Source of the DNA: Lepidodermella squamata | Taxonomy: Eukaryota > Animalia > Gastrotricha | Assembly (NCBI GenBank): GCA_047495785.1 | Contig: JBLDXI010000099.1 | Span: 8,531-72,530 of the forward strand | DNA: 64,000 nucleotides | Direction of reading: 5' to 3' | Shown: positions 39,633-64,000 of the stretch, piece after piece | How the letters are laid out: every line of letters begins with the position of its first letter | How positions within the stretch are numbered: position 1 is the stretch's first letter | Made by a program: the position numbers and the translations under genes | The notes under the pieces: model-generated | What the model saw: only the letters and a program-made list of their open reading frames with translations | Database searches by the model: none | What the model was told of the DNA's origin: nothing

Positions 39633-42600
39633 GGGGGCGCGATATGAGAGTTCCGAAGGAACGTAGTTCCTTACAAGTGTTTTACACATACGCCGTAGAT
39701 TACCACGAACGAAGTGAGATACCTTCCGAAAGGCACCCCCCGGGAACGAGTTGGTTAATAGGACATACTCAGATCAACTTACCCGATTTATGGTGGTATC
39801 CTGGACCCCTCAGGACCTCCCAGAAGTTTTTTCAGCTCAATCGGAGCTTCCGTTGATTTTCTAGAAATTAGGACGGTTTTTTCTTATTTTACCGTATTTT
39901 TTGGTCACGTGACCTGAAATGGGTAGTATATGAGGGGACAGTAGGAGGATATGATAGGTACACCAAAAAACAAACCACGCTGACCAAAGCTTCCCAGCCA
40001 GCTGACAGGCTGGCCCCTCGCCCCTGGGGGAGAGGGGCCCACAATAGATCAACAATGCAAGCTCGCGACTAAAGAGCAAACGACAAAAAGGCAATATAAA
40101 TAAAATGCAAGGTCAATTGAAAAGACGTGAGGCAAATAAATTGTGAATTATGCATTTAAAGCAACAGAATTACCCGTAATCGACTACGGAGAATCCGAAT
40201 ACGACATTCATTTTGTTAAAGCAATGATAATCCAATGATAATCACTTCAACAAATTTCGCGCTCGAGCAGCTGCGTTACGGACTACGGAGAATCCGAATA
40301 TGACATTTATTTCATTATCGAAATATGATAACCCATGATAACCCTTCAAACCATTTTCGCCCTCCTTTTACCCACTTTCGCCGCGCCACTTGCGTATTTT
40401 CACCACGAGTTGCGTATCTTTCACCACCTAACAACTTACGACGCATCACTGTTGAGGTAAGAAACTTCGAACAAGCACTTCAAATTATGCGCCACATCGA
40501 CCCATCGACATCGAGCTGCGTATCGCTGAGGACCATCTCATCATTGTTGTAAATTCAGTCATTCATGTACACTGATGATTGTTATACGTTATACGTATGT
40601 GTTCCTTGTGATATGAGTTCTTTGAGAACCTTGTGGAATATGTGTTAAACGTGATTCACCACAAAAGATCCGCCTTGAAACACAGCTAACTTACACTGCC
40701 TTTTTGTGTCCATTGCCATAGAAGGTGCATTTTGCACATTAATCTATGGGTTTACCCGTAATCGACTACGGAGAATCCGAATATGACATCCATTTTATTA
40801 TAAAGCAATCCTAACCCCATGATAATCCTTCCAATAATTTTCCAAAAATGTTCCGGCTCGCGCGGCTGCGCCGCACTCGCTGAAAGAGTTGCGTAACTTT
40901 AACCACCTTACAACTTAACGAATCCTCACCGATGAGGTAAGAAACTTGCAAGTGTGAATATGCACAGTTTCACATAGCAAAAACCAGCAAGTTGGACATG
41001 GCACCCCATTAAAAAACCAAATTAGCCAAATTAGCTGAACATGTTCTTTACGAAGAAATGTTTCATATTTCGACGTTTTCGTCATCAACAATTTTTTATA
41101 TTATTTAATTCAACCCTGCTTGATATTTTACAAACATTATTCGAAACTTCTAAGAAAGGTCCATAAAGTTTCACATTTCACAAAATGCATTTTTATTTTT
41201 CATTCATGCTACTACGAAGTACTAATGATAGCGCGGTACAATAACAAACACGTTGACATATGATATCTCAACGAAGCCGTCATTCACCAGATCTGGATAC
41301 GGAATCCTCGCCACTTAATTCAACGTTGATTAATATTTTGCAAACATTTTTCGAAACTTTTAAGTATCCCAGTAGGGTCCAAAAAGTTCAACATTTCCCT
41401 TGACAATACCCTCGGGAAGTAGCTGTAGCGCCAGTTTTTTCGAGCTGTACGGCTCTGTGATGCATTACTCAAATTTCGAACTCGTAAATGGGAGGGAAAC
41501 CAGATCCTTCACAACTTCACTGGTCTTCTTTTTATAACAAAATCATTCCATCCCATATCTTGCGTCACACGCCGCGTTCGCACGCGCATGATTGAGGTTG
41601 GAGGTCTTCGACTTTAAAATGATAACCCTACCAGCAATCCGTGCTAACGATTACGTCAGCCGGGAAAGTTCATCTTTTTCGGACCTTCATCAGCGGGAAC
41701 GATTACGTCTCATAAAAAAACTAGTTGTTCCCTTCCACGGTCCCGTATATTTCGCGTTGCAGAGATTGTGGATGTTCCCCAGGCAAAATTGAACTTTAAA
41801 GTACAAGTTCCCAACTGCCGTATCGCGCGGAATAATTACTGCAAAGGTTTACCTGCCATTCTCGTTATCACTTCTAAATAACGTAAAACAGTCTCGTATC
41901 AATTTCGTTGATTTTCGATTTTCACTACATTTAAGGAAAATATATAGTTGGTGCTTGACGTACCGAAAAATGAGTGTGTAGTCTGATTCAATGTTAGGGT
42001 TCGTATTGTTCGCTTTTAGAGCGGCGTCCTTTTCAAGCTTCACTTTCCGCCCCGTTCACTTTCAAAGGAAGGTCGAGGGTTCGAACCCAAGCTTTCGTTG
42101 AACTGCTCTCTAATGATTTCTGTCAACATGCTCTCGCTGTTGGCGATATTTGGTCATCGACTTCAATTCAACTTCAATTCAATCCTTGTCATTCAATTGT
42201 AACCTCAACAATTTGTTTTTCAAGAAATTACCGAAACTTCGGATAGTCGTTGGTTCGAACCCAAACCCTCGTTCAACTGCTCAGCAACGATTTCTTTCAT
42301 CCGTATGCTCTCAATCTTGGCGTTAACGTCGTTACCGAAATCGATTTACCTTGTACATGTTATTCAATCGCACCCTGCTTGAATTAGTATGCCAATTTTT
42401 TGAAAATTTAAAAGTTAAAAGGTCGAGGTTTCGAACCCAAGCTTTCGTTGAACTGCTTTGTGATGATTTCGTTCTCCTTCATGCAGCCAGAAGCTCTTGA
42501 CGTCTAAATGCTCTCGTTTTCGGCGTCAACGTCATTACCGAGATCGATTCAGTTTGTACATTCAATCGCTCCCTCCTTCAATTTTTATAACAATCTCGTC

Positions 42601-45600
42601 ATCAGTGACATGGATTCTACCAATTCATGTCATTCAATTGTTACCCCGATTAATTTTTACAACAAACCTATCGAAACTTCGAAACTTAACTTAAATTATA
42701 TTATCCAACCTTCATGTTTTGTTATTTGCGTTCTCGTCATCAGTGTCATCGATTCTCCCAATTCATGTCATTCAGTTGTTACCCCGATTAATTTTTACAA
42801 CAACCTCTCGAAACTTCGAAACTTTAGCTCAAACCTTCTTGTTTTGTTCTTTTTGCGTTCTCGTCATCAGTGACATGGATTCTACCAATTCATGTCATTC
42901 AATTGTTACCCTGATTGTTTTTTTACAACAAACTCTCGAAACTTCGAAACTTCAAAACATGGTCGTGGGTTCGAACCAGATTTCTCCTTTTTCTACTCAT
43001 CAATTTGTTCTTTAACCTTCACGCATTCGTTGTTGGCGTTTTCGTCATCAGCTACATCGATTCTACCAATTCATGTCATTCAATAGTTCTTTTGTTTGTT
43101 TTTCACAACAAAGTCTCACTTCAAAACATGGTCGTGGTTTCGAATCCGATCTCTGGTCGTTCCGCTCTCAAATTTTATTCTTCAACCTTCCTGTTTTGTT
43201 ATGTGCGTACTCGTCATCAGTGACATCGATTCTCCCAATTCATGTCATTCAGTTGTTACCCCGATTAATTTTTACAACAAATTCTCGGAACTTCGAAACT
43301 TGACTTAAATTATATTATCCAACCTTCATGTTTTGTTATTTGCGTTCTCGTCATCAGTGACATCGATTCTCCCAATTCATGTCATTCAATTGTTACCCCG
43401 ATTAATTTTTACAACAAACTCTCGAAACTTCGAAACTTCAAAACATGGTCGTGGGTTCGAACCAGATTTCTCCTTTTTCTACTCATCAATTTGTTCTTTA
43501 ACCTTCACGCATTCGTTGTTGGCGTTTTCGTCATCAGCTACATCGATTCTACCAATTCATGTCATTCAATAGTTCTTTTGTTTGTTTTTCACAACAAAGT
43601 CTCACTTCAAAACATGGTCGTGGTTTCGAATCCGATCTCTGGTCGTTCCGCTCTCAAATTTTATTCTTGAACCTTCCTGTTTTGTTATGTGCGTACTCGT
43701 CATCAGTGACATCGATTCTCCCAATTCATGTCATTCAGTTGTTACCCCGATTAATTTTTACAACAACCTCTCGAAACTTCGAAACTTTAGCTCAAACCTT
43801 CTTGTTTTGTTCTTTTTGCGTTCTCGTCATCAGTGACATGGATTCTACCAATTCATGTCATTCAATTGTTACCCTGATTGTTTTTTTACAACAAACTCTC
43901 GAAACTTCGAAACTTCAAAACATGGTCGTGGGTTCGAACCAGATCTCTCCTTTTTCTACTCATCAATTTGTTCTTCAACCTGCACGCATTCGTTGTTGGC
44001 GTTTTCGTCATCAGCTACATCGATTCTACCAATTCATGTCATTCAATTGTTAACTCGATTTTACAACATCTTCTCGAAATTTTATGAAAGCGAATAAATG
44101 TTCAACTACTCTTTAACGTGCATTCTTCTCTAAATATTTCCAAGCCATTCAAAAATACGTTGGACGGTTCCTGAGCGAACCCGAAATTACTACTTATCTA
44201 TAAACACCTAATCCGGAGAACATTCAAATTTACAATTCAATTTCATGTTTCATCAACATTGGGGTGAGGGGGAAGCACCGTCCCCTCCAACGACGTGGAG
44301 GGGATCTCGTAGGGGTGGTTCGAGTCCGTACCCATTACCCAGGAGAGTAGAGAAAAAGAAAGAAAAGGCTAGCGCAGCGTAAGCCTTGTCGAACTCTCCT
44401 GGATGGGGGCGCGACTCTGGGAGTTCCGAAGGAATGGGGGCGCGATATGAGAGTTCCGAAGGAACGTAGTTCCTTACAAGTGTTTTACACATACGCCGTA
44501 GATTACCACGAACGAAGTGAGATACCTTCCGAAAGGCACCCCCCGGGAACGAGTTGGTTAATAGGACATACTCAGATCAACTTACCCGATTTATGGTGGT
44601 ATCCTGGACCCCTCAGGACCTCCCAGAAGTTTTTTCAGCTCAATCGGAGCTTCCGTTGATTTTCTAGAAATTAGGACGGTTTTTTCTTATTTTACCGTAT
44701 TTTTTGGTCACGTGACCTGAAATGGGTAGTATATGAGGGGACAGTAGGAGGATATGATAGGTACACCAAAAAACAAACCACGCTGACCAAAGCTTCCCAG
44801 CCAGCTGACAGGCTGGCCCCTCGCCCCTGGGGGAGAGGGGCCCACAATAGATCAACAATGCAAGCTCGCGACTAAAGAGCAAACGACAAAAAGGCAATAT
44901 AAATAAAATGCAAGGTCAATTGAAAAGACGTGAGGCAAATAAATTGTGAATTATGCATTTAAAGCAACAGAATTACCCGTAATCGACTACGGAGAATCCG
45001 AATACGACATTCATTTTGTTAAAGCAATGATAATCCAATGATAATCACTTCAACAAATTTCGCGCTCGAGCAGCTGCGTTACGGACTACGGAGAATCCGA
45101 ATATGACATTTATTTCATTATCGAAATATGATAACCCATGATAACCCTTCAAACCATTTTCGCCCTCCTTTTACCCACTTTCGCCGCGCCACTTGCGTAT
45201 TTTCACCACGAGTTGCGTATCTTTCACCACCTAACAACTTACGACGCATCACTGTTGAGGTAAGAAACTTCGAACAAGCACTTCAAATTATGCGCCACAT
45301 CGACCCATCGACATCGAGCTGCGTATCGCTGAGGACCATCTCATCATTGTTGTAAATTCAGTCATTCATGTACACTGATGATTGTTATACGTTATACGTA
45401 TGTGTTCCTTGTGATATGAGTTCTTTGAGAACCTTGTGGAATATGTGTTAAACGTGATTCACCACAAAAGATCCGCCTTGAAACACAGCTAACTTACACT
45501 GCCTTTTTGTGTCCATTGCCATAGAAGGTGCATTTTGCACATTAATCTATGGGTTTACCCGTAATCGACTACGGAGAATCCGAATATGACATCCATTTTA

Positions 45601-48600
45601 TTATAAAGCAATCCTAACCCCATGATAATCCTTCCAATAATTTTCCAAAAATGTTCCGGCTCGCGCGGCTGCGCCGCACTCGCTGAAAGAGTTGCGTAAC
45701 TTTAACCACCTTACAACTTAACGAATCCTCACCGATGAGGTAAGAAACTTGCAAGTGTGAATATGCACAGTTTCACATAGCAAAAACCAGCAAGTTGGAC
45801 ATGGCACCCCATTAAAAAACCAAATTAGCCAAATTAGCTGAACATGTTCTTTACGAAGAAATGTTTCATATTTCGACGTTTTCGTCATCAACAATTTTTT
45901 ATATTATTTAATTCAACCCTGCTTGATATTTTACAAACATTATTCGAAACTTCTAAGAAAGGTCCATAAAGTTTCACATTTCACAAAATGCATTTTTATT
46001 TTTCATTCATGCTACTACGAAGTACTAATGATAGCGCGGTACAATAACAAACACGTTGACATATGATATCTCAACGAAGCCGTCATTCACCAGATCTGGA
46101 TACGGAATCCTCGCCACTTAATTCAACGTTGATTAATATTTTGCAAACATTTTTCGAAACTTTTAAGTATCCCAGTAGGGTCCAAAAAGTTCAACATTTC
46201 CCTTGACAATACCCTCGGGAAGTAGCTGTAGCGCCAGTTTTTTCGAGCTGTACGGCTCTGTGATGCATTACTCAAATTTCGAACTCGTAAATGGGAGGGA
46301 AACCAGATCCTTCACAACTTCACTGGTCTTCTTTTTATAACAAAATCATTCCATCCCATATCTTGCGTCACACGCCGCGTTCGCACGCGCATGATTGAGG
46401 TTGGAGGTCTTCGACTTTAAAATGATAACCCTACCAGCAATCCGTGCTAACGATTACGTCAGCCGGGAAAGTTCATCTTTTTCGGACCTTCATCAGCGGG
46501 AACGATTACGTCTCATAAAAAAACTAGTTGTTCCCTTCCACGGTCCCGTATATTTCGCGTTGCAGAGATTGTGGATGTTCCCCAGGCAAAATTGAACTTT
46601 AAAGTACAAGTTCCCAACTGCCGTATCGCGCGGAATAATTACTGCAAAGGTTTACCTGCCATTCTCGTTATCACTTCTAAATAACGTAAAACAGTCTCGT
46701 ATCAATTTCGTTGATTTTCGATTTTCACTACATTTAAGGAAAATATATAGTTGGTGCTTGACGTACCGAAAAATGAGTGTGTAGTCTGATTCAATGTTAG
46801 GGTTCGTATTGTTCGCTTTTAGAGCGGCGTCCTTTTCAAGCTTCACTTTCCGCCCCGTTCACTTTCAAAGGAAGGTCGAGGGTTCGAACCCAAGCTTTCG
46901 TTGAACTGCTCTCTAATGATTTCTGTCAACATGCTCTCGCTGTTGGCGATATTTGGTCATCGACTTCAATTCAACTTCAATTCAATCCTTGTCATTCAAT
47001 TGTAACCTCAACAATTTGTTTTTCAAGAAATTACCGAAACTTCGGATAGTCGTTGGTTCGAACCCAAACCCTCGTTCAACTGCTCAGCAACGATTTCTTT
47101 CATCCGTATGCTCTCAATCTTGGCGTTAACGTCGTTACCGAAATCGATTTACCTTGTACATGTTATTCAATCGCACCCTGCTTGAATTAGTATGCCAATT
47201 TTTTGAAAATTTAAAAGTTAAAAGGTCGAGGTTTCGAACCCAAGCTTTCGTTGAACTGCTTTGTGATGATTTCGTTCTCCTTCATGCAGCCAGAAGCTCT
47301 TGACGTCTAAATGCTCTCGTTTTCGGCGTCAACGTCATTACCGAGATCGATTCAGTTTGTACATTCAATCGCTCCCTCCTTCAATTTTTATAACAATCTC
47401 GTCATCAGTGACATGGATTCTACCAATTCATGTCATTCAATTGTTACCCCGATTAATTTTTACAACAAACCTATCGAAACTTCGAAACTTAACTTAAATT
47501 ATATTATCCAACCTTCATGTTTTGTTATTTGCGTTCTCGTCATCAGTGTCATCGATTCTCCCAATTCATGTCATTCAGTTGTTACCCCGATTAATTTTTA
47601 CAACAACCTCTCGAAACTTCGAAACTTTAGCTCAAACCTTCTTGTTTTGTTCTTTTTGCGTTCTCGTCATCAGTGACATGGATTCTACCAATTCATGTCA
47701 TTCAATTGTTACCCTGATTGTTTTTTTACAACAAACTCTCGAAACTTCGAAACTTCAAAACATGGTCGTGGGTTCGAACCAGATTTCTCCTTTTTCTACT
47801 CATCAATTTGTTCTTTAACCTTCACGCATTCGTTGTTGGCGTTTTCGTCATCAGCTACATCGATTCTACCAATTCATGTCATTCAATAGTTCTTTTGTTT
47901 GTTTTTCACAACAAAGTCTCACTTCAAAACATGGTCGTGGTTTCGAATCCGATCTCTGGTCGTTCCGCTCTCAAATTTTATTCTTCAACCTTCCTGTTTT
48001 GTTATGTGCGTACTCGTCATCAGTGACATCGATTCTCCCAATTCATGTCATTCAGTTGTTACCCCGATTAATTTTTACAACAAATTCTCGGAACTTCGAA
48101 ACTTGACTTAAATTATATTATCCAACCTTCATGTTTTGTTATTTGCGTTCTCGTCATCAGTGACATCGATTCTCCCAATTCATGTCATTCAATTGTTACC
48201 CCGATTAATTTTTACAACAAACTCTCGAAACTTCGAAACTTCAAAACATGGTCGTGGGTTCGAACCAGATTTCTCCTTTTTCTACTCATCAATTTGTTCT
48301 TTAACCTTCACGCATTCGTTGTTGGCGTTTTCGTCATCAGCTACATCGATTCTACCAATTCATGTCATTCAATAGTTCTTTTGTTTGTTTTTCACAACAA
48401 AGTCTCACTTCAAAACATGGTCGTGGTTTCGAATCCGATCTCTGGTCGTTCCGCTCTCAAATTTTATTCTTGAACCTTCCTGTTTTGTTATGTGCGTACT
48501 CGTCATCAGTGACATCGATTCTCCCAATTCATGTCATTCAGTTGTTACCCCGATTAATTTTTACAACAACCTCTCGAAACTTCGAAACTTTAGCTCAAAC

Positions 48601-49236
48601 CTTCTTGTTTTGTTCTTTTTGCGTTCTCGTCATCAGTGACATGGATTCTACCAATTCATGTCATTCAATTGTTACCCTGATTGTTTTTTTACAACAAACT
48701 CTCGAAACTTCGAAACTTCAAAACATGGTCGTGGGTTCGAACCAGATCTCTCCTTTTTCTACTCATCAATTTGTTCTTCAACCTGCACGCATTCGTTGTT
48801 GGCGTTTTCGTCATCAGCTACATCGATTCTACCAATTCATGTCATTCAATTGTTAACTCGATTTTACAACATCTTCTCGAAATTTTATGAAAGCGAATAA
48901 ATGTTCAACTACTCTTTAACGTGCATTCTTCTCTAAATATTTCCAAGCCATTCAAAAATACGTTGGACGGTTCCTGAGCGAACCCGAAATTACTACTTAT
49001 CTATAAACACCTAATCCGGAGAACATTCAAATTTACAATTCAATTTCATGTTTCATCAACATTGGGGTGAGGGGGAAGCACCGTCCCCTCCAACGACGTG
49101 GAGGGGATCTCGTAGGGGTGGTTCGAGTCCGTACCCATTACCCAGGAGAGTAGAGAAAAAGAAAGAAAAGGCTAGCGCAGCGTAAGCCTTGTCGAACTCT
49201 CCTGGATGGGGGCGCGACTCTGGGAGTTCCGAAGGA
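39631..49236 (+). repeat. Tandem duplication of a 4,803 bp non-coding unit (39631-44433 and 44434-49236); probable non-autonomous rolling-circle element copies
   Basis: ORF track repeats identically at offset 4803; no credible protein; each unit starts atgggggcgcgatatgagagttccgaagg. Confidence 0.9.
42065..44090 (+). repeat. Complex tandem repeat of ~125-180 bp subunits containing B-box-like GGTTCGAACC (second copy 46868-48893)
   Basis: Repeated cgtcatcagtgacatcgattctcccaattcatgtcattca...cgaaacttcgaaac...ggtcgtgggttcgaacc. Confidence 0.85.
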
Positions 49237-50032
49237 ACGCCAGTTCCTTTACACGTGTTTTACACATACGCCGTAGATTACCACGAACGAAGTGAGATTT
49301 CATCCCAACAGGGGGGCCCGAGAACGCGTTGGTTAACAGGACATTCTCCGATGAAGCCGCCCGATTTATGGTAGTATCCTGGACCCCTCAGGACCTCCCA
49401 GAAACTTTTTCAGCTCTAACGGACCTTCCGTTGATTTTCTAGAAATTAGGACGGTTTTTTCCTATTTTACCGTATTTTTTGGTCACGTGACCCGGAATGG
49501 GTAGTATATGAGGGGACAGTAGGAGGATATGATAAGGACACCAAAAAACTAACCACGCTAACCAGAGTATCCAAGCCAGCTGACAGGCTGGCCCCTCGCC
49601 CCTGGGGGAGAGGGGCCTACAATAAATCAACAATGCTAGCTGGCGACCAAAGAGCAAACGACGAAAAGGCAATATACGTAAAAGTCAAGGTCAATTGAAC
49701 AATTCTGCGGCGAATAAATTGTGCATTTTCCATATACAACAATAGGTTTACATGTAATCGACAACGGAGAATCCGAATATGACGTTCATTTTGTTATGAA
49801 GCAATTATAACCCAATGATAGCCCCTCCAACTAATTTTTCTGTTCACTGCTATGGAGTTGGCATGGTTATATTTTTTATTAAATAACATAATGCAGTTCA
49901 AGTTTCAGGGCTCGAAGTTTTAAAGCACATTTTCAAGTGAGCGGTTCAATAACGCACTGTCTTATTTCCATATTCATATGCATGCGCAGAAACAAAAAAA
50001 AATAATAATAACAATAAAAAATTAAAAGAAAA

Positions 50033-50108
50033 TGTGTCGCGGCCGGGACTCGAACCCTCCATTAACTGCATTTCACAACGTTACACTGAAACCACTCGGC
50101 CACAACAC
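50033..50108 (-). ncRNA. tRNA-like Pol III small RNA gene (non-canonical)
   Basis: Reverse complement GTGTTGTGGCCGAGTGG (A box)...GGTTCGAGTCC (B box)CGGCCGCGACAC; ~12 bp terminal stem, then T-runs; no proper anticodon stem. Confidence 0.5.
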
Positions 50109-50841
50109 ATCTGACATATCCATCGCAAATTAAATTTCAATTAAATATTCAACGAAATTATCAAAACAGTTTCCAGCGCCTTCCGGGAATCGGACGCGTC
50201 TCTATATAATTTATTCACTATATAATTCGCTACGCAGTGGTTCGGAAGGCAGTGGTTCGATTGCTGCTCACATCACATTTTTCCTTCTCATTTTTTCTTC
50301 TTAAAATCAGATTTATTTCTGTTTAATTTTTTTGCAGAGTGAGCAATAAAAAATAAACGTTTACCATTCACGTGAATCTTCATGAGTACAAAGTGCATGC
50401 CTGTCATATGGCCGACACGCGATTCAGCATCAGCTGTTTCACGGCGCAGCGGCGGCAACAGCAAGCAGACGGTTCGATCCGGTATTCAACCATCATTCAC
50501 AACGATTTATTTCTCTTCAAAACAACCTCTATTTCCCTAATCATTAGAATTACTTATGCTGCCAGCTCCTATCAATCTATCTTCCGCTCGAATCGATAAC
50601 ATTGTGACAATGTTGCTCTCTCAGGTTTGCTAGTATATTATTCCCAGTTCATATCACCATTCCCACTATAATTACAGCTACTGGATGAAATGGCGATTTC
50701 AACACTGTTGTCCACTTTGGTTTTCCATGGTCACTACTCCCTACCAGAAAGCGGTGAGTACATTATTTTCCTCATTCATTTTTTTTACTATTGTAAAATT
50801 TATTGATTTTTTCATTCATTAACACGTTTTTTTTGCTCCCC

Positions 50842-52785
50842 AATATTTTCTTTCGTCGTTATGCTCCCGTATTCGACGTTTTCGCCATCAGCAACGTCGA
50901 TTCCACTAATTCATGTCATTTAATTTTACCCTGATTTACTTTTTTCAAGAATTTTTTCAAACTTTGAAATTCCAAACCAAGGTCGTAGGTTGGTGCCCGA
51001 CCTCTCATTTTTTCGCCCTCAAATATTTTCTTTCATCGATATGCTCCCGTTCTCGACGTTTTCGCCATCAGCAACGTCGATTCCACTAATTCATGTCAAT
51101 TAATTTTACCCTGATTTACTTTTTTCAAGAATTTTTTCAAACTTTGAAATTCCAAACCAAGGTCGTAGGTTGGTGCCCGACCTCTCATTTTTTCGCCCTC
51201 AAATATTTTCTTTCATCGATATGCTCCCGTTCTCGACGTTTTCGCCATCAGCAACGTCGATTCCACTAATTCATGTCAATTAATTTTACCCTGATTTACT
51301 TTTTTCAAGAATTTTTTCAAACTTTGAAATTCCAAACCAAGGTCGTAGGTTGGTGCCCGACCTCTCATTTTTTCGCCCTCAAATATTTTCTTTCATCGAT
51401 ATGCTCCCGTTCTCGACGTTTTCGCCATCAGCAACGTCGATTCCACTAATTCATGTCAATTAATTTTACCCTGATTTACTTTTTTCAAGAATTTTTTCAA
51501 ACTTTGAAATTCCAAACCAAGGTCGTAGGTTGGTGCCCGACCTCTCATTTTTTCGCCCTCAAATATTTTCTTTCATCGATATGCTCCCGTTCTCGACGTT
51601 TTCGCCATCAGCAACGTCGATTCCACTAATTCATGTCAATTAATTTTACCCTGATTTACTTTTTTCAAGAATTTTTTCTAACTTTGAAATTCCAAACCAA
51701 GGTCGTAGGTTGGTGCCCGACCTCTCATTTTTTCGCCCTCAAATATTTTCTTTCATCGATATGCTCCCGTTCTCGACGTTTTCGCCATCAGCAACGTCGA
51801 TTCCACTAATTCATGTCAATTAATTTTACCCTGATTTACTTTTTTCAAGAATTTTTTCAAACTTTGAAATTCCAAACCAAGGTCGTAGGTTGGTGCCCGA
51901 CCTCTCATTTTTTCGCCCTCAAATATTTTCTTTCATCGATATGCTCCCGTTCTCGACGTTTTCGCCATCAGCAACGTCGATTCCACTAATTCATGTCAAT
52001 TAATTTTACCCTGATTAACTTTTTTCAAGAATTTTTTCAAACTTTGAAATCCCAAACCAAGGTCGTAGGTTGGTGCCCGACCTCTCATTTTTTCGCCCTC
52101 AAATATTTTCTTTCATCGATATGCTCCCGTTCTCGACGTTTTCGCCATCAGCAACGTCGATTCCACTAATTCATGTCAATTAATTTTACCCTGATTTACT
52201 TTTTTCAAGAATTTTTTCAAACTTTGAAATTCCAAACCAAGGTCGTAGGTTGGTGCCCGACCTCTCATTTTTTCGCCCTCAAATATTTTCTTTCATCGAT
52301 ATGCTCCCGTTCTCGACGTTTTCGCCATCAGCAACGTCGATTCCACTAATTCATGTAAATTAATTCTACCCTGATTTACTTTTTTCAAGAATTTTTTCAA
52401 ACTTTGAAATCCCAAACCAAGGTCGTAGGTTGGTGCCCGACCTCTCATTTTTTCGCCCTCAAATATTTTCTTTCATCGATATGCTCCCGTTCTCGACGTT
52501 TTCGCCATCAGCAACGTCGATTCCACTAATTCATGTCAATTAATTTTACCCTGATTTACTTTTTTCAAGAATTTTTTCAAACTTTGAAATCCCAAACCAA
52601 GGTCGTAGGTTGGTGCCCGACCTCTCATTTTTTCGCCCTCAAATATTTTCTTTCATCGATATGCTCCCGTTCTCGAAGTTTTCGCCATCAGCAACGTCGA
52701 TTCCACTAATTCATGTCAATTAATTTTACCCTGATTTACTTTTTTCAAGAATTTTTTCAAACTTTGAAATTCCAAACGAAGGTCA
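50842..52785 (+). repeat. 180 bp tandem repeat (~10.8 near-identical copies)
   Basis: Sequence lines recur every 180 nt (ttcgccatcagcaacgtcgattccactaat...). Confidence 0.97.
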
Positions 52786-53039
52786 TTTTTTTGAATTTTA
52801 GAATTTCGGAAATTTATATTAGCATTTCATTTTTTTTTATTTTTTCTCTTTTTTACCAGTTTGCGAATCGAATGACCGATGTTGCACATGCTGTAATCAA
52901 ATGGCTGAAAACGATTTCAAGACGAAGTGATTTGTGATTTTTCAAACGTGCTACTTCATTTGAACGTTGTTTACCAGCTTTGCTGTATGATGCTTTTTAA
53001 ATTATATTGTTCCAAACCCCATTTTCGCTGACCCAGGCA

Positions 53040-53325
53040 GTAATAGGGTAGAGATGCCGTCTCAATGCCCGGCTATGCAGTTAAATAGCCAACCGACGTT
53101 GGAATAGTCGGTATAAACTTCCACCGTCCCGGCTCAGACGGCGAAAACGACCACGTCTTGGTGAGACGGTAAAAAAAACTCCGACAAGGCAAGGTCGGTA
53201 AAAAACTTCCAAAATGTCCGCAGGGCTGAGCGACCAGCGCCCTCACTGTGATTCGTCACAAATACTAAGCTGGAAGGGAACCTATGACGATCTGTCAGGC
53301 ATCTTCGGATCCGAGGTTTCTCCCC
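53040..53325 (+). ncRNA. Unclassified, highly structured RNA (or ssDNA) element upstream of the RepHel gene
   Basis: At least eight adjacent GC-rich hairpins, including two UUCG tetraloops, within AT-rich flanks. Confidence 0.55.
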
Positions 53326-53484
53326 GATATTTCAATTATTGATGTGCATTGGTAATTTCAATAAAATATGTTTTTCATTTCAATATATTTTTTTTAATTG
53401 ATGTTCTTCATTCCATTCGCATATGGTGTTATTTTTTATTTATCTAGTTTTATGATGACAATTTTGTGATTATGAACTGGAATC

Positions 53485-56400
53485 ATGGTGAAACCGCCTA
53501 ATTGGAAGCCAAAATCGAAGGGATCGCGTAAGTGTTCCTTTTGCAAACGGAAAGGTGTTCGAATCTCAACCCACTGCGGACTACTCAATTGCTCTAAAGC
53601 TAAAGGGCAACACCATCCCAAGCCGTGCATTAAGGTTCAACCTCCACAGTCCGCTTCTCAGTCCAATTGTATGTTTTCCTAATCAATCAGTTATATATGT
53701 TTCATCTGTTTTTACACAGCCACGTCGTGTTCGCATGTTGGCGAATCTTTATCGGTAGCTCCATCCTCACTCACTGTTCAGAATACGTCTCAGCAGTCGT
53801 TGATATCTCAAGGCTTGTTCTTGTTATTCATCCTCAAATTGTATAAATTTGCGATAAAATTTCCCCATAGGTAGCGGCGCTGTTCTGACTGCTTCGGAGC
53901 AATTGTTGGATTCTCAAGGTCAGTAATTTTTATTTCTCAACTATAACTTGACATGTGGCTGTGCCGTTCCAGCTGTTCCGGCTACCCGGGAAGATCCGCT
54001 GCCACCTCCGGGTTAGTTGTTAGATTGAGATTTATTTCATGTCTTGAGCGAATACCACTAAGCTCTTTTAAGAATTATAAGAATTGAAGAGGTGTTAACA
54101 TATGATTGTTATGTCATTTAGTCTTGTCAAATAATATTTTCAGGCGCTTCTTTGAACGAACGGCAGGAATCTAGCGCGCCTGCAACACGTCAGCCAGTAA
54201 CTCAGCCATCTTGTCCAGTATGCGGCGCAAAAGGCAGGAAGTATCTGACCCACTGCGACAATGAGGAATGCCGGATTAGTGGCCGCGGGCATCACGCTAA
54301 TCCCTGTTTCCAGTTGGAACGACCCGGGCTACAGGCCGGTGTAAATCTTGAGCAGCAACGTAAGTATTATCCACCGGGTAACAACCTTTCATAAATAATG
54401 ATTCATTTAGCTGTGGCGTCCTCTGGAGCTGTTGCTGCTACGTCACAACGGTCGCTGCCATCTATAGGTTAGTTATTTAATCAAGAATTGTGCTGCCTGG
54501 TGTTAACTAAAACTGCTGTTTGTTGCAGCTAGTGGTGGTTCTTCTAATGCACCTATTCTATGTGACAACTGCAGAAGACGATCGGTGCCCTTTTTCGACA
54601 TCGACATTGCTGTCGTGGAAGAGCCGGTATCTGGACGCAGCTATGGTGCTCTAGGACTAAGGAAAGTCTATGAAAACTGCTCGTTATGCCGTTGTTGCCG
54701 TCACTATTTGCGCAACGGCGATGCTCGTTTTCCCGCCGGATGGCCAGCCCTTGTTTATAGCCTTTTCTTCAAAGCAGCGAATAGGCACCTAGCAGAGGCC
54801 CTCTCTAACTACATATCGCCGCTCATGAAAATGATGTGGAGCGAGGTCGACGGCTCAAATGTTATGCGGGACTCGCAGCCGTGTTTCGTTGACAAGACAC
54901 GTGATCTGGCTGATTTCATGGCCAATATCTACAAAGACGCAGGTATTCTATCAACCTACTAAATGAGTATACGAATGCAGTTTTTTTTTTAATTGCAGGA
55001 GGATTCAGTTACGCGCTAAACATGTACCCAGTGCCCGACGTGATATGTCCGCAAGGTTGCCTCGCTTTCATGGAGAAGTGCCAGCTAATCCCGTACCATC
55101 ATTTGATCCAACATGTCACTGGCAGCAATTTCTTCGATTCCGACTTGCGCTGGTTCGAGTCAAGGAGACCCGACTGGCCGTGCAACCCAGTGCCTTTCCT
55201 CGCTTGGGATTTCGCTGCTGCAATGGTCATGGACGAGACAAAGGGCCTATGCATCCTTGCCTGCATTGACCACAGCAAGCCGGACCTGTTTTCCATGTAC
55301 CTGCATCTCCCTGCGAATCCCGAGTTCGACCGGTTCCACGATCCGCAGCAGACCGAAATCTATGCACCCGTGCACGTGCAGCCCAATTTCGTCAGAGGCG
55401 GGCGAGTCGGTCAGTCGAACGCATCAGTGCCAGTGACAAAAACTCTGGGTGATCAATTAGGTGTCGGCAGCTTTACATTGCGTGGTGCTCACTCGGCAAA
55501 TCGCAAGGCTTTGAGCATGTACGCCAGCGCCTTTAAGCCACACCTTTTGGCCTTGCGATATCGTCCTGAGATTCGCAACACCGCGATCAGCAGATTTGGC
55601 GAGGAACACGTGGCTCACGTTCTTGCTGATTTTGATCAGCATTGCCCAACTGCTGTCGTGAGAAACCATGTCAAGGGTGGCACTTTCATCGAGCTAGCTG
55701 ACTGTTACTTCACCTGGGCTATTCGCCGCAAAATCGCGACAGGTCAGTACATTTCATTCTTAATCTACTACTATAGATTAGACTCAACAGAATTAGCACT
55801 GCATTAATTTTGCTGATAGTGATAGCCTTGTAATCGGGCCCTGCACTGAATTTTAGATGCGTTTTGTCCAATATAAAATTCTCCAATATAAATGGTCAAA
55901 GAACGGATGTAGCAACTGTAGTAGAGTATCGCGCGGGATAACCACTGCAAATTATTATGTAGTGTACTTCGGGAGGATAAGATTAGGCCGATCGAACTGC
56001 TCCAAATTCTCGATATAATAAACAAATATAGAGATACTAAGATTCAAGCGCATTAACAATTCATCATCGATTCCTACGAATTGTCTCATTTCGTCCTTCT
56101 TTATTTTAGGAAGTGATTCGTCGAAAAAAGGGAAAACACCTTCAGAAGCCGTGATCTTCAATCCGGTTCACCCGAACGATGATCATGGCTTAATCCCCTG
56201 GGCGTTCAAGTCGGGTCAAGGCGACAACCCTAGTCAGCTCCTGACACTGGTTGCCAACGTCGTTTCGTTGTGCCGCCCTGTGTACCGTGCGGCGTTGAGT
56301 CATCTAGTGCTTGGCAGTCCCGATTTAACACGCGTCGACATCGGTGACTTGCTCAGTCATACTGTTTCGCTGCCGCGCCCGAAAACCCCTCGTACTCTGA

Positions 56401-59400
56401 ATTTGTCGCATCTGGCAAGGGACTTCTGGTCACTGACAGAACCCGAAAGTGATAGCGGATCTGACGATGACGAAGAATCCCCCGATGTCGTTACGCGGGC
56501 ATTAACTTTGATTGGGAGAGTTACTGCGCCGATTAATGATGTCGAGTTGTCGTTTGCTGGATCTCATCTTTTAGCGATAAGAAAGGGGCAAACCATGGAC
56601 GGCGAAAGAAGGAGTCTCCGAAGTCATGGTGAGTGTTTTATTCATATTTTGGCAATTATTGCTGCATTATTAGACGTTGTGGTGATACATATCATGATCT
56701 TGGGTCCTGAATTTCAAAATTTACTGGTTTTAATCAAAAATTGAAACAACAAAAAATTGAGGGCTCCCATTCAAGTTATAATGACGTAAATCTTGAAATA
56801 TTGAGTAATTTTCAAATCGTTTGATTCATACCTAGATAACCCTTGTTTATTTCGTGTTGACAGTGGGTAGGGTGCTGGTCATCCACGGAGGTCAATCTCA
56901 GCTGCTGACCGAATACCAGACTTCGCATGAGCTGCTGATGTGCCGACCCGAAGGTGCCTTGCCGATCAATTGGCCCGCATTGCCCTTGTCGCTGAAAGCT
57001 GGTCATCACCTGCTACTTGCCCGCGTCAAGTTTGGCTCGAAATCCTACATCGTTTTTCGATGGTCGCCTAGCTTCAGTGGCTGGTGGACAGTAGAGCCTA
57101 GCGGGCGAGTGGTTCGTGGTGTCAGTGATCAGCACATGCGCTCTGACGTCCAATTTGCGATTTACGCTCTGCCTGGCAACCAGACGTTCTGCAATCAAGC
57201 CGTCCGTCAATCGCTCGGTGGTCAAAGCAAGGCTGCCTGCGAAATGCATTTCGACTCTGTCGAGTTCAACTTCACTCTTATGAAAGTGCCGGTGAAACAT
57301 AAGGTGAAGTGTTGCATGCGATCACCGGGAAGAGCCAATCAATGCGGCAAACCTGCTCAGTTGCGCTGTCCTGCGGGCTTGCAGAATGGCAGCTTGTCGT
57401 GCAGTGTCGGCATCTGCACGCGGTGCTTCAAGAAGCTTCCAGCGGACGGTATCACCAAGCTCTCAGCGCCTGACTTTCTGCCTGATGTGCCTGAAGATGC
57501 TGAATTGCAACTGTCAGCTAGCAGGGCATCGAACTTGGAAGCTCAAGCCGACGAGGTTCCGCCGCAGCCTGAGCAGCTTCATTTGGCTACTGATATTCAA
57601 TTTCCTCGAGGCGATGCTGAGCCGCTGTATGATCCGACCAAGGGTATTCTCGCCAAGTATCTCTGGCAGCACTTGGGAATTCTGCAGCGAACCAGGCTCG
57701 CTTTCGATTCTGCCCAGAAGTCTTTTCTACTGCAGCAGATGGTTGCCTTCGGAGATGCCCCTGCTACTTCCATCTTGTACCCGGAGGGTGCTCTGTTTCC
57801 GTCACTTTTCTATTGCCAACGTGATGGCAGTGTTGTTGGTGCTTTGCCTCACCATCACTACTCGTCCTACAACTCCGACTATACAGGTGGAATCGGCTCC
57901 CTGTCTGATCATGTCAAAGTCAGGTTGCGCAACTTCTTCTTGGCAACAAGCTGGTCGTTTGCGTCAATCTACTTCTCCTTTGACATGAAGCTATCGGCGC
58001 AGCTGAACAAAAACAGCACTGCAATCTTCATGAAGCGTGGGACAGAAGGCCTGGCAGGTAAAGGCGCTGTTGGCTGGTCTCCTCCTGGCACGGCTCTCGA
58101 ATACGAGGAGTTCGACAAGGAGTCGAGGCTGAAAGAGCTTGGCGCCCTAATCAAGCATGAAGAATGGAAGTGGTTCGGGACAATTACTTGTAATGATACA
58201 GGTTAGCACAAGTTTTGGTATTCAATCTCACTCAATTGTAGACTGAATAATTTCTCCAAGAATTGTTTGAAATTTGAAATTTTACCACCTCGACCTACAC
58301 AATGCATTATTTTTCAATTCCAGGCACACCTGGTGTATGTGAAATCGTCAAAGCCCTTATGATAAACGCTCAAAGGCACCATGGTCCACGCCCTGTTCTG
58401 TCGAAGGCCGACTATCAGCGAACTTTTCGTCAGCGTCTGCTCCTTGTTTCAAGGCTTGACGAGACCGAGTACAAGCGGCTGTACTACGCCCATTTCATCC
58501 TCATCAGCATGGCTTGGCAACGAGTGCAGGAGCATCTGATCGAGTTCCTGAAGCGCACGAATGTTGTTGGCACTGTCACCACTATTTTCGTCAGGAACGA
58601 ATTTCAGAGCGAATCACTCGTTGGCAACAAAAGTCATCTGCATATGGGCATTTCAGTACGCGAAAGCCGGGCAGAACTGCTGGAGAAAGTTTGCTGTGAT
58701 CCTCGTGAATTCTTCTCGGAGCGGTACGGCACGTCATTCGACGAGCTTCAGCGCTTGAGGTTGGTCGAGAGCCGAGATCACTTCGAGCTGCTCAAGGAGG
58801 TCCATTACCCCTTCCAACGTCACGAATGCGAGAAAGCGTTTTGGAAATGTCAAGTTCCACGCGGCGAAGGAGGGGAAATGGTTTGCCGAGTTCGCCAGCA
58901 CGGCGTCTCCAGCAGCGGCTATTTCGAAGAATTCCGCAACGTGTACTCCGAGGATACCCTGAAAGAGCTGCAATCCCTAGACCTCGCCAGAGAAGTGCCC
59001 AATCCCACTGGCGACTTTGACTGGGAATTTCTGGCTGATCAGCTCAAGTCGGGCGTGTACCACTACGCGATCAAGCATCTCGAGAAGGGCGTGAAGTTCA
59101 TTCCGCAAATCCCGATCATCGCGGCAATGATGGGCGGCTCCACGAACTTTCAGATATGCGATTCTCATTTCAGCGTATCTTACCTGACGAGCTACGTTGC
59201 CAGCTCCGACGCTCGCCCTGAAGCTTACGCTGCAACGACAGATGTTCCGGGCCAAGTCGTTGCTTTGTTCCCTGCTGGTTTTGAGCGAGGTCAAAAGCTT
59301 GCTAGTGTTCGGTGAGTAATATCTTTGCACTTCAATTGACTTGAAAAACTTTGATGTTTTTAGGAAAGTGATGGAAGCGAAGCTGAAGCATTTCCGTCGA

Positions 59401-62400
59401 GAAAGCATGCAGAGCTTTATCTTCATCGCCTTGACAGAAGTTGCTTGGTTCGCGTTGGGGTTTCCCTACACCATCACGAATGTCGGTTTCGTACACATCA
59501 ACACACACCCACCAGCTTCGCGGCTAATGTTGTGGCGACCGAAAGAAGCAGTGAAAAAGCGACTACCGGGTATGCTCTTGAGAATAGTTATTGTGATTAT
59601 TTTCAAATAATATTCCAAAAACAGGTACAGATGTAGTTGCTGTCGACCCAAACTACAATCGCCGGGGCCTGCCTCAGTGGCGCTTGTTCACGGAAGCATG
59701 CATTCGTCTGATCATGAAAATGAGAGGCACGAATCTGCTAGCTGGCCCTGTCGAGAAGTTCGAGATTCGACCTCCCGAGGCTCGTATCTTTGCGTCACCT
59801 GCTATCTATCACGCGGTGTTCGTCATCGACCGGAAAAACCGACGACCATACAACCCGATGGTCGATCCTTACATCCGTTTTTTCGACGGCTTCAAGCGGG
59901 AGGTCCGAATCAACGATTGCAGTTTGCGCATCGCGCTCGACTATCTGGCTCAGCAGGACCAATCCAATGCAGCCGTTCAAGCACTCACGGAAATTTTCGA
60001 ACTCTTGGTCGAAGGCGATCCTGTCTATGTTGACCGGTAACGATCTTTACGTTTTTATAATTTTCGGAATATTTCAAATGTACGCTGAACTAGGTACTTG
60101 CACGTCACAAATAAGGCGGCGATAATTCCAGTCCTATCCACCATCTCTCCGCTCAACCGCTTCAACTTCTTGTATCACGTCGTCATGACGTTTGGTCGAA
60201 TCGAAGATGAGGCTACTACCTTTCCGGCTGGGCATCTCCGGGCGGCATTTGTTCGATCGGGGCTCATTCGGGTCAATCCTGAAGGCGAGCCGACCAACCT
60301 TCCTGCCGACGTGAGGTCTCTGAAGCGTCGCGTCATTCTCGAAATCTTCGCTTTCCTGCCAATCGGTGTCAAGAGATTCGATTTTTACGTCGCCACTCTG
60401 AAATCCATGTTCGAGCAGTTTTTCTTTGGCGATGGAGGCACCGACAATCTCTCGGCACTGACTGACTGGGATGCGATTGAACGGGAAGTTGACGAGGATA
60501 TTGTCCGAGCGGAAGGAGAAATGAAGCGGTCTGTGGTTGAGGTGACGCATTCGCAGCTTGTCGGGAAATTGCCGCTACCACCGCTGTCGGATTTCACTGA
60601 CGCTACATCGTGTCAACCTTTGGAATGGATTCCGAGTCTTCAACGACAACCAGGTCAGTCGGACCAGTCTTTCCAGGAGCAGCAGGCGGCTCTGGCTTTC
60701 GGTATGAAGACACTCGAACGCTTCCGAAGCAGAGCTAGCTTCAAGCACATCGCACTGGTTGGTCCTCCTGGGGCTGGAAAGACAACGCTGGCGCAGATCC
60801 TTGCCATGGTTGCCGTTTCTAAGGGACTACGAGTTGTCATTACTGCTTTGACCTCGGAGCGAGCACGAGTTCTTGGCGGTCGGCACATCCACCTGCTTTT
60901 TCCTTTGCCGGTTAAGCAAATACCGTACAAAAATGTAATGGCGTATGCTGACGGCTGCCTCAAGAATCTGTGTTTCAAGACTACGCCGTCTGTTGTCCTA
61001 TATCGGGCTGACGTCTTCATCATCGAAGAAATTGGGCTGGTCTCTGCTGAAACCCTGGAAATCTTGGACACAGTTATGAGGAGTCTTACAGGTAAGCAAA
61101 CCAGCATTCAATTATTACTGGTATTTATAGTTTTCATTAGGAGTCGATGCGAAAATGGGTGGCAAATTGATCATTGCTACCGGGGACTTTGCTCAGCTCG
61201 AGACGATCAATGGTGAGAGTTGATTTATTGCAATACTAACATGTATATTGTATTTGTTTTTTTTAATTATCCCAGGTCGATCCTTTTGGGAATCAACACA
61301 ATTGTACCTCAGCTACGACGTCGCATTGTTGAAACATTTCGTTCGGGCTGCCACTGACCCGCTACTCCAGCGGGTGCTGTTGATTTTGCGGCAAGGCGTT
61401 CTTGACGAGATTGACCGGGACTTCATCCTCAAAGCTGTGACTAGAACGTGCAACTTTTACGACACTTGGGACAACGTTCCGTTCCTTGTCCAGCGGATCG
61501 TCCCAACAAGAGAAGCTGAACAAGAGGTTAGTTGGAAACGGAAAATTTTGGTGATCACTCTTGCCTTTCATTAATTGATCAGGTCATTCGGAAGTTCCTG
61601 CAAGACGCTAGTCTCAGTGGCAAGACTTTGAAAACAGCTCTATGCATCGACGAAGTAAACACGCGTGGTGCCTGGGAACCTCTTCACCGTCCCGAATGGA
61701 AAAAAGCTATCAACAAACAGTCACTCAAGCCCGAGAACTTAACGCTCTTTGTTGGTGCTGTGGTTGCTATGACCTACAATCACGTAGCGTCGAACCCGCA
61801 ACACTCCTTCTCCCAAGGGCAGCTAGCTCTGGTGACGCAGTTGCCGGAAGACATGGCCGCACCGGATGCCAAAATTTCTGTCCGCTTGGTTCCTCCAGGG
61901 CTGCGTGACATTGCACCAGATGAGGCTTGGCCAGAAATAAGTGTGGGCCGGCATCGGGACGATAACATTGTTGTTGGCGACAACAAAACGCACCTGCGTC
62001 GTGTTCAGTTTCCGCTGCGGCATTACATTGCCTCGACTATTCATCGTGAGTGCTAACCTTGTTTTTATATTCAAGTATATAAAAATGTTAATTGTTTTCA
62101 GGAATCATGGGTTCTACCTGCGAGAACGGCGTTGCAGCCAAGATTGCTTCCAACGAGAAGGTACGTATTGCGAACAATAACTGTGGATATTGATATGTTC
62201 AATGTACTGTAATGAAGGGCTACGTGCTATGGGAACGGGCGCAGCTTGCTGTCATTCTCTCGCGGTGCCGTTCACTTGACCGTGTGTCATTTGTTGGCGA
62301 ACGCGCAGACATCACTGTGGCCATCGAAAGGCTGTTGATGGCAGTCGATGAGCCATACGAGGCTATCGTCGCATCGCTGCAAACGCTGGACGTGCTGCCT

Positions 62401-63352
62401 ACCTCAACAGTCGCCAGTAACTGGTCAGCCGGACGACAGCAGCAGGTCAGCGACCCCGACGAACTGCCCGACATCACGTTCCGCGTTTTACGAACAACTT
62501 CCGGGTTAGTCCACTTACTTATTTGGCTCTTTGTATAGTCAACTCACTAATTGCGTATGTCCCATTATATATCGAGTCTTGACAGTTCATATTTCTATAA
62601 CCATTTTATTATATTTCAAAATAGAATAAGTCGAACGTTTTCAAGAAAATTTTTCTTATAGATCATTCACGATCGAGCAGCTTGGCGATGCTCAAACTTC
62701 CATCCCATTGTAAGTATGGCATTGTTCATCTGCTTTATATACTATTCAAAACTTCTTCATAGCCCTGCAACCGTTGACCAGGCAAGCTCCTCCGATGCGC
62801 CTGTTGTCCCACGGTTAGTATAACCTATCAATTCCATTTCATTGCTTCAAATTCTGCTCAATTTATCAGAGTGCCGACATTGTTGGACTTCTACCGCGTC
62901 GTCGGTCCTGATTTGTCGGAACGCGAGCCCAATGGCGTCGTTTATCAATTGGTGGAGGTGGCTCAGCCGTGGGCCAGCTACTTTGGCGAAACCGAGCAAG
63001 CGCCTCTACAGCGACTTTATGACCACAATCACAGTAAATACAAGAGAGACTAAAAAAATCGAACTGCTAACATTTGATTTCAGATGCAGGGGCCGCGATG
63101 ACTCGCGGCAAGCAATGGCATTTGTACGCCGTCGCTCGTGGCTTGCCTGATGACGAAACCAGGTTGAACCTGGAGAAAAGGTGCCAGGACCTAATTACAG
63201 CGCAACCTGAGCTTTTGCCGTGGCAAGTTAGGACCAAGTTTGAGTCCTACGTGGACGACATCAACGCTCGCCTGCATGGGTCCACTGCTGTAATTCGTTA
63301 CGGCGAGTTGGACGAGGCTAAGGTTCACCGCCTGCGTACGATCTCCTTGTGA
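53485..63352 (+). CDS. Large intron-rich RepHel-like transposase: Cys/His zinc motifs, HUH Rep endonuclease, Pif1/RecD-type SF1B helicase and C-terminal GIY-YIG nuclease (~2,600 aa; exact 3' end uncertain, may extend to ~63460)
   Basis: Rep motifs WFGTITCN, RNEFQ...SHLHM, QRHEC...C, NFQI...YLTSYVA. Helicase motifs GPPGAGKTT, IIEEIG, GDFAQL, QFPLRHYIASTIHRIMG, LAVILSR. GIY-YIG motif GVVYQL...YFGET...RLYDHN...GAAMT. More than 20 exons with GT-AG introns. Confidence 0.85.
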
Positions 63353-64000
63353 GTCAGCTGATGGATGTCATTCTTTTTACTCAATCCTTTCACTTTTCAG
63401 CACGTCGACAATTAGAGTAGCACCGGCGCCACCGTCAGCGCAAGAAGAAGCAGGTGAACTAATCGACCAAGATCCGCCCCCAAAGCGGTAAATAGATTTA
63501 AGTTCACATTTGCTTGTAGCTTTTTACTATTATTTTCAGAATTCATCTCGCAAATAATTGTTCGCCGTCTTGATGTTTCTGCCGATCTTCCGATAAATGA
63601 AATGTTCCAATTCAATGTTTTTCCTAGTAGTAGCCAATAAACGTATTGCACTTTTTCTAATAGTGTTTATTGAATCAGAGTTATCAGATCGACTTGACTT
63701 AATATGAATCAAATCGCCACGAAACCGTAATTTGTCTGATCCTTGTGCTTCGTCCATTATATAATTTTTCTAAAAGATTACCTAAGCTGATTGCCATGCT
63801 CTTGGCTCTGTGGCAACCGAACCATATTCATCTCACAAGTTGGCACTACAGTTGCTTCCGGAACCCACCATAAAGATGACAGGTCTTAGTTTCAAGTTTT
63901 TCCATTGCATCACCATTGCTAAATCAAAATCCATCAAATAAAAATGCTTCCCTGCGTAAATCTATAATTTCAAATCTTAATCACGGAAAATAAGGTTTAT

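Follow-up and report, generated by a model that had tools for sequence, protein, structure and literature searches.

A hairpin array in the putative control region of a divergent Helitron-like transposon from the gastrotrich Lepidodermella squamata

Genes and Repeats of the Locus

The window analyzed here, by which we mean the whole stretch of 64,000 nucleotides (64 kb) from a Lepidodermella squamata contig, contains a short GC-rich island that lies between a tract of tRNA genes and tandem repeats and the start codon of an intron-containing, Helitron-like gene (Table 1). The island comprises 295 nt with a GC content of 52%, as compared to 31% and 23% in the sequence that flanks it on the 5' side (52785-53030) and on the 3' side (53326-53484), respectively, and its compositional boundary is sharp. 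Relative to the ATG of the gene, the island spans positions -160 to -450. The exons of the gene have about the same GC content as the island (52%), and the island flanks are similar in composition to the short, AT-rich introns of that gene and to intergenic DNA. The + strand of the island contains four A runs and no T4 run; a T5 run occurs ~45 nt downstream of the island and a TTTT run at 53022-53025. Upstream ATGs are frequent, with five within the island and seven more ahead of the start codon, or twelve counted from 53031.

A second copy of the island was not detected in the 64-kb window (blastn of 52700-53500 against the whole window). Two scans of metagenome contigs yielded no match to the island, and two scans of viral collections and one of prokaryote collections returned only chance 19-mers, none of which extends.

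On the 5' side of the island, 22 eukaryote-type tRNA genes are encoded on both strands in a dense 3.8-kb cluster (35750-39514); one of these (38781-38866) was detected by Rfam only and not by ARAGORN. Beyond the cluster, a 4.8-kb unit occurs twice in tandem in essentially identical form (40000-44802 and 44803-49577) and is followed by a partial third, which has in common with the others only positions 49000-49837 (~87% identity) plus satellite. The 4.8-kb units hold satellites of 127-180 bp whose monomers include tRNA T-arm-like strings (GGTTCGAACC), and GC-rich palindromes with stems of 6-9 bp are found at the unit borders (39994-40039, 44266-44304, 44797-44842, 49069-49107, and 49575-49617). 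A 62-nt piece (58220-58281) that is 77% similar to the 180-bp satellite upstream of the island sits in a putative intron of the Helitron-like gene. A tRNA-like sequence on the - strand (50035-50110), with clear A-box-like and B-box-like strings, was called by neither ARAGORN nor Rfam; it is probably a tRNA pseudogene or the head of a SINE.

Elsewhere in the window, ORFs encode a tetraspanin, a TXNIP/ARRDC-type arrestin-domain protein, and the domain of the cohesin regulator WAPL. For the first two of these, the similarity to solved vertebrate and nematode proteins is only distant. An ORF on the - strand (31433-33157) encodes a reverse-transcriptase domain (RVT_1; E 1e-32) and probably belongs to a non-LTR retrotransposon. 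The region from 13000 to 15000 is unlike the contig elsewhere: its GC content is 63-68%, and long ORFs that overlap one another occupy both strands and match no Pfam model.

Table 1. Position, strand, and basis of the features at the island, in the gene downstream, and in the repeats upstream (coordinates are those of the window).
Feature	Position	Strand	Basis or statistic
Cluster of stronger GC-rich palindromes (6-9 bp stems) at border of 4.8-kb units	49069-49617		Candidate true element terminus
180-bp satellite, 10.9 copies, 96-98% identical, directly upstream of island	50828-52784		Monomer with 8-bp palindrome TCGACGTT..AACGTCGA and T-arm-like hairpin
TATA-like AT stretch, ~30 nt 5' of island edge	52996-53010	+	Sequence reading only
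GC-rich island between AT-rich flanks	53031-53325		Composition; blastn of 52700-53500 against window, self-match only
Imperfect 10-bp hairpin, GGGUAGAGAU / GUCUC..UGCCC, requiring + strand G-U pairs	53046-53070	+	-9.4 kcal/mol, z -2.6
Perfect 6-bp hairpin GGCTAT/ATAGCC, 8-nt loop	53071-53090		-8.7 kcal/mol, z -3.4
Repeat unit 1: (A)CCGAC, 9-nt loop with GG, GTCGG(T), A-rich linker to TTCCA	53092-53123		-8.9 kcal/mol, z -2.4
Repeat unit 2: CCGTC, 8-nt loop with GG, GACGG, linker to CCA	53124-53153		z -1.5
Repeat unit 3: CGTCT, loop TGGTG, AGACG, A8 linker; stem slipped one base relative to unit 2	53154-53180		z -1.1
Repeat unit 4: CCGAC, 8-nt loop with GG, GTCGG, A6 linker to TTCCA	53181-53215		z -2.7
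3' part of island: agggc/gccct, two TTCG loops, proposed three-way junction; GC-rich, no excess structure	53216-53325		z +0.27
AT-rich spacer (23% GC), island to ATG	53326-53484	+	Composition, intron style of gene
Divergent Helitron-like transposase gene, intron-containing	53485-63414	+	Homology to relatives, collinear over 54555-62523
Putative HUH and Y motifs	58302-59315	+	Sequence of Rep ORF
PIF1/AAA_30 helicase	60098-61216	+	Helicase ORF matches AAA_30 and PIF1
GIY-YIG half-motif, weak	62778-63050	+	E 0.12

The Downstream Gene and Its Relatives

The start codon of the gene downstream is located ~160 nt 3' of the island. Its Rep ORF (58302-59315) reached no Pfam model and had no relative in the PDB or by word search. 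An exhaustive, profile-free search with the same ORF identified 123 relatives with an identity of 34% at best, among them many metagenome proteins 1500-3600 residues in length as well as proteins of Cyprideis torosa (an ostracod) and Styela clava (a tunicate). The relatives encode OTU, Helitron_like_N (weak), PIF1, and C-terminal GIY-YIG domains, and tblastn alignments of these proteins are collinear with the window (Table 1). The preliminary description of this DNA had labeled the gene RepHel-GIY-YIG, and the domains of the relatives together with the weak GIY-YIG half-motif in the window bear this label out.

Judged by its homologs, the gene is a real, very divergent Helitron-like transposase that combines a putative Rep with a PIF1-type helicase, the pairing that marks the HLE2/Helentron type. 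The element that it belongs to is, on the same grounds, of the HLE2/Helentron kind with a GIY-YIG domain replacing the AP endonuclease of Helentrons. We found one mention in the literature of GIY-YIG in such elements, as a capture in an HLE2 family of Sphagnum (moss; PMC11417382). The branch of Helitron-like elements with the order OTU-Rep-PIF1 helicase-GIY-YIG is widespread and barely described.

The first exons of the gene (53485-53667 and 54152-54394) encode two similar Cys/His knuckle-like motifs (CxxC..KG..THC....C). This motif is absent in all 128 family proteins that were retrieved (P0001-P0128).

The DNA upstream of the gene was compared among four distant relatives (L001, L002, L003, and L005) by GC profile, motif search, and sliding z-scores over the 1.5-2 kb before the start codon; a second copy of the L003 locus (L004) was subjected to the GC profile and motif search only, and three further loci (L006-L008) included too little upstream DNA. 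Neither a GC island, nor the unit motif described below, nor a consistently low z-score was found within 2 kb upstream of the gene in the four distant relatives. The conservation of the element upstream of homologous genes that the preliminary description had looked to was thus not observed, in a comparison that bears on long-range conservation only. The relatives' loci also contained no tRNA genes and no Rfam matches, and tRNA targeting was rejected as a family trait because of this lack of tRNA genes.

GC-rich palindromes, by comparison, cluster in the flanks of several relatives, as they do in the repeat units that adjoin the island. Two copies of one relative (L002 and L009), which are 88.6% identical across 13.3 kb, have the gene embedded in 1.28-kb tandem units, every one of which contains GC-rich palindromes with conserved stems and variable loops, and the collinear block of the two copies begins 17 nt ahead of one such palindrome. 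Three or four palindromes, for example CATCTCCC..GGGAGATG, are shared among these units (L002 1-4200 and 15400-18800; L009 1-5100 and 16300-17400). In further relatives, palindrome clusters are found a few kb away from the gene. The palindromes at the borders of the 4.8-kb units in the window resemble in style those that flank the relatives' transposase genes. In the closest relative, from C. torosa, kilobases of short tandem repeats (AGCAATT-type; L001 5000-13000) are present upstream of and inside the annotated gene, and these parallel the satellites upstream of the transposase gene in the window.

A Degenerate Tandem Array of Short Hairpins

The preliminary description had presented the interval upstream of the gene as a dense multi-hairpin element, and all of the strings that it quoted are present where it had placed them. 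Seven perfect hairpins (stem of at least 5 bp, loop of 3-10) were identified in the island as compared to 1.6 +/- 1.3 in dinucleotide shuffles, and seven were reached in only 3 of 2,000 shuffles. This density places the island in roughly the top 3% of 300-nt windows on the contig, which is high but not unique. The structured feature proper is a run of six consecutive short hairpins that spans ~160 nt (53043-53200) rather than 285 nt.

Four of these hairpins, which had been described as similar and as separated by A-rich linkers, indeed constitute a degenerate tandem unit of 27-31 nt (starts at 53093, 53124, 53154, and 53181) with a mean column identity of 63%. The consensus of this unit is CCGWC, a loop that includes GG, GWCGG, and then an A-rich linker, in most cases with TTCCA or CCA at its end. 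Of the four matches to the motif CCGWC-N4-10-GWCGG in 64 kb, three are within 53093-53198. The loops had been characterized as variable, which is accurate for their length (5-9 nt) and most of their sequence but not for a central GG, which all four retain. This suggests that the loop is read.

All four stems are perfectly paired, but the base pair at the stem center differs: units 1 and 4 have A-T in this position, and units 2 and 3 have T-A. This two-sided switch represents weak internal covariation, seen among only four units. Collectively, variable arm spacing and a stem pair that changed on both sides point to selection for a hairpin in single-stranded nucleic acid and fit poorly with a double-stranded dimer site of fixed geometry.

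Fold Stability and RNA Families

RNA folding of the whole element yielded a modest z-score of -2.46 relative to dinucleotide shuffles. The excess in fold energy was confined to the 5' half (53040-53215; RNA z = -3.87), where none of 200 shuffles was as stable, whereas the 3' half (53216-53330) folded no better than shuffles (z = +0.27). The idea of a dense structured element that is more stable than shuffled controls therefore holds for the 5' part and fails for the 3' part.

Several of the features that had been emphasized previously are in the 3' part. The proposed three-way junction (53272-53325) had a z-score of -0.15 when folded alone, and its MFE fold is another structure. The UUCG loops had been taken as pointing to function as RNA; the part that contains them is no stabler than shuffles. 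Three long-range pairs had also been suggested, and these are at the level of chance: the island contains 13 long-range complementary 6-mers as compared to 6.7 +/- 3.2 in shuffles (49 of 1,000 shuffles reach 13), and the majority of the 6-mers arise from the repeated CCGTC/GACGG motif.

In the 5' half, the z-scores of RNA from the + strand (-3.87), RNA from the - strand (-3.15), and DNA of the + strand (-3.28) are nearly equal, and no strand-specific or RNA-specific fold signal was detected there. Near-equal RNA and DNA z-scores are expected of perfect Watson-Crick palindromes and thus provide no argument for RNA. Two of the island helices require G-U pairs that are possible only on the + strand.

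Rfam 15 was used to scan the whole window at gathering thresholds and positions 52800-53600 at E<=10. At gathering thresholds, only the 22 tRNAs at 35.7-39.5 kb were identified. Even at E<=10, the Infernal/Rfam scan produced no match on either strand of the island, and the three hits in 52800-53600 were chance matches located off the island. Known RNA families, including hammerhead, HDV, RNase P/MRP, SRP, snRNA, IRES, and riboswitch, were dropped on the basis of this empty result, and we found no positive evidence for the ribozyme, IRES, or guide RNA that had been proposed.

An identity as a tRNA-like sequence or tRNA-derived SINE was rejected in turn, as the island is called by neither ARAGORN nor the Rfam tRNA model. 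Local alignments of the island with all 22 tRNAs of the window and with the tRNA-like sequence at 50035-50110 scored at the level of shuffles, and a 10-mer (ATGCAGTTAA) common to the island and the latter sequence is not significant.

Position Relative to the Element Terminus

Helentrons and other HLE2 elements feature palindromic subterminal repeats, stem-loops, and carried tandem repeats, and a stem-loop is located at the 5' end of HLE2-reverse elements and proto-Helentrons (PMC4067079; PMC11417382). The palindromes and tandem repeats of the window and of the relatives agree with this published anatomy. An inverted-repeat partner of 12-16 nt was not found beyond chance 10-mers when 49500-53500 was compared to 63000-64000, an interval that extends 590 nt past the gene; the 3' end of the element may lie outside the window. 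HLE2 insertion falls between T and T, and in this respect only the TTTT run at 53022-53025 was noted. Island sequence was detected in neither the neighboring 4.8-kb units nor the satellites, that is, a terminal sequence common to non-autonomous copies was not found at this site. We also considered homology of the island with the satellites and with the border palindrome clusters of the 4.8-kb units and rejected both, as neither was significant.

Since the island is single copy, missing from the adjacent units, and not homologous to the border palindromes, the true 5' end of this element copy may be near 49.0-49.6 kb, where the stronger palindromes cluster, rather than at the other candidate end, ~53.03 kb. 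The island would then be internal to the element and proximal to its promoter. The palindrome clusters consequently cut two ways: hairpin modules are a trait of such elements, yet the true terminus may be elsewhere.

Interpretation of the Array

Rep-helicase enzymes act on single-stranded DNA and recognize hairpins. This property, together with a stem and loop pattern that favors a single-stranded hairpin, leads us to propose, tentatively and as the foremost of several possible readings, that the island acts in cis as a hairpin array within 5' non-coding DNA of the transposon and provides single-stranded DNA docking sites for the transposase. Specifically, the island would be part of the 5' non-coding region of a transposon of the HLE2/Helentron type, with a GIY-YIG nuclease at the end of its transposase, and the active part of the island would be the ~160-nt run of six short hairpins. 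These hairpins would form on single-stranded DNA during rolling-circle transposition, as the helicase of the element unwinds the DNA, and would act in the manner of iterons, offering the Rep-helicase protein of the same element a series of docking sites. A single-stranded DNA cis element, the last of the alternatives in the preliminary description, agrees best with present knowledge of Helitron-like elements.

The main weaknesses of single-stranded docking are the short stems and the occurrence of the island as a single copy that is not repeated in the neighboring units. At no more than 5-6 bp, the island stems would make weak hairpins in DNA; the stems of the palindromes in known Helitron-like elements, in the relatives, and at the unit borders measure 6-11 bp. 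The lack of an inverted-repeat partner, the finding of nothing comparable in four distant relatives, and fold statistics that do not separate DNA from RNA also argue against it.

A transcribed leader ranks second and is, in our assessment, a doubtful but serious competitor. In this case, the TATA-like stretch at ~53000 would drive transcription of the transposase mRNA, the island would be the non-coding first exon (~53031-53348) of that mRNA with an intron at ~53349-53446 after it, and the hairpins would be 5'-UTR structure that is possibly protein-binding or IRES-like. The TATA-like stretch could represent a promoter with a transcript start at ~53031-53040, and the AT-rich spacer before the ATG could house the core promoter or, alternatively, a short intron of the 5' UTR, with GTAATT at 53349 and a CTAG whose last base is 53446. 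Weak hints of a + strand transcript are the location of the TATA-like stretch ~30 nt before the island, plausible donor and acceptor sites in the spacer, a GC content like that of the gene's exons between flanks that are like introns or intergenic DNA, the two hairpins with G-U pairs on the + strand only, and a + strand free of T4 runs. However, the upstream ATGs, both the five in the island and the seven that follow it, are contrary to a scanning leader, the IRES and cis-regulatory families of Rfam have no match, RNA of the - strand folds nearly as well, and a structured leader is not seen in the relatives.

We consider it unlikely that the island is a non-functional relic, either a captured fragment or a short, degenerate minisatellite whose unit is palindromic, in the 5' region of the transposon. 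Helitron-like elements frequently pick up foreign fragments and tandem repeats and carry them along (PMC11417382; PMC4067079), and a relic is consistent with a single-copy island that has no relatives among the sequences searched, with the modest fold statistic of the island as a whole (z of -2.5), and with a hairpin density that is matched elsewhere on the contig. Perfect pairing in four of four units despite loop divergence and a compensatory stem change, as well as the sharp compositional boundary, would not be expected of such a relic.

Less probable still is an independent host gene for a small non-coding RNA, or a SINE-like retroposon, that merely adjoins the transposon. The discrete GC island with its T5 run downstream and no T4 run on the + strand, weak A-box-like (~53044) and B-box-like (~53098) strings at tRNA-like spacing, units that end in CCA, and a neighborhood rich in tRNA genes and T-arm satellites are compatible with this explanation. 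It is opposed by the absence of any Rfam family at E<=10 on either strand, by the lack of significant similarity to the tRNAs and the tRNA-like sequence of the window, by a 3' half without excess structure, and by the single copy in 64 kb and the lack of matches in metagenome, viral, and prokaryote collections.

Tandem repeats are common in transposon promoters, and the least likely of the alternatives is a promoter or enhancer module that acts as double-stranded DNA, in which the four ~30-bp units would bind a host or element factor that drives or silences the transposase gene; the position of the island ahead of the ATG, a unit spacing of 27-31 bp (about three helical turns), and conservation of the linker (TAAAAAAC-TTCCA) and the stem arms would suit such a module, but an arm distance that varies from 5 to 9 bp and a central pair that flips in both arms jointly are unexpected for a fixed dimeric site, and no candidate factor is identifiable.

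Single-stranded DNA docking sites thus remain our preferred explanation of the array. A function of the array within this divergent Helitron-like transposon is plausible, and as a structure it is at most a variation on transposon ends or leaders that are already known. If the array is a real cis element, it would open a first way into the question of how Helitron-like elements of the GIY-YIG-bearing branch recognize their own DNA, and its four short hairpins would be compact substrates on which binding and nicking could be assayed. As a mere leader exon or relic, the array would be ordinary. A bolder proposal, which we regard as improbable, is that the GG-loop array is a dedicated recognition module of the GIY-YIG Helitron-like clade, either as a single-stranded DNA docking site that sets the start or end of transposition or as a transcribed scaffold RNA to which the transposase is recruited by way of the zinc-knuckle-like motifs at the N terminus of this protein. 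Such a module, if true, would be a cis or RNA component that has not been described for Helitron-like elements. The transposon family is of more interest than the island itself.

Comparison With Known Systems

Structured RNAs of mobile elements include hammerhead ribozymes in Penelope-like elements, HDV-like ribozymes in non-LTR elements, and omega and bridge RNAs. The island is similar to these in being a structured non-coding segment beside a mobile-element gene with a GIY-YIG nuclease. It differs in having no Rfam match and no conserved catalytic core, and the part of it that the preliminary description had taken as most like RNA is without excess stability. To our knowledge, there is no RNA step in Helitron-like transposition.

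The HIV-1 packaging signal comprises four stem-loops that are bound by zinc knuckles through loop guanines, and the Xist A-repeat is likewise a hairpin array. Both share with the island short GC stems, G-containing loops, and homopolymer-rich linkers, and the likeness to the HIV-1 signal extends to the two Cys/His knuckle-like motifs in the first exons of the transposase gene. However, the HIV-1 and Xist arrays are RNA, whereas any transcript of the island is putative, and the knuckle motif is missing from the retrieved family proteins.

Among HUH systems, the TnpA transposases of IS200/IS605 recognize subterminal hairpins, and the origins used by geminivirus and circovirus Rep consist of a stem-loop and iterons. 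In these systems an HUH nuclease acts on single-stranded DNA, hairpins are recognized, and motifs are reiterated near the gene, all of which resembles the island if its putative binding by the transposase is accepted. The stems of these systems are longer and a conserved nick site is located in or beside the loop, whereas no nick motif can be named in the island.

The closest parallels are the subterminal palindromes of Helentrons and HLE2 elements (PMC4067079; PMC11417382). The island is unlike these in that it consists of four 5-bp hairpins in tandem plus two more, rather than one palindrome of 5-10 bp near a defined end, in that a terminal position of the island is only putative and no 12-16 nt inverted-repeat partner was found, and in that the endonuclease is GIY-YIG rather than AP-type. 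In common with them, it features short, GC-containing palindromes in non-coding DNA beside a Rep-helicase-endonuclease gene, accompanying tandem repeats and satellites, T-rich surroundings, and a hairpin on the 5' side as in HLE2-reverse elements.
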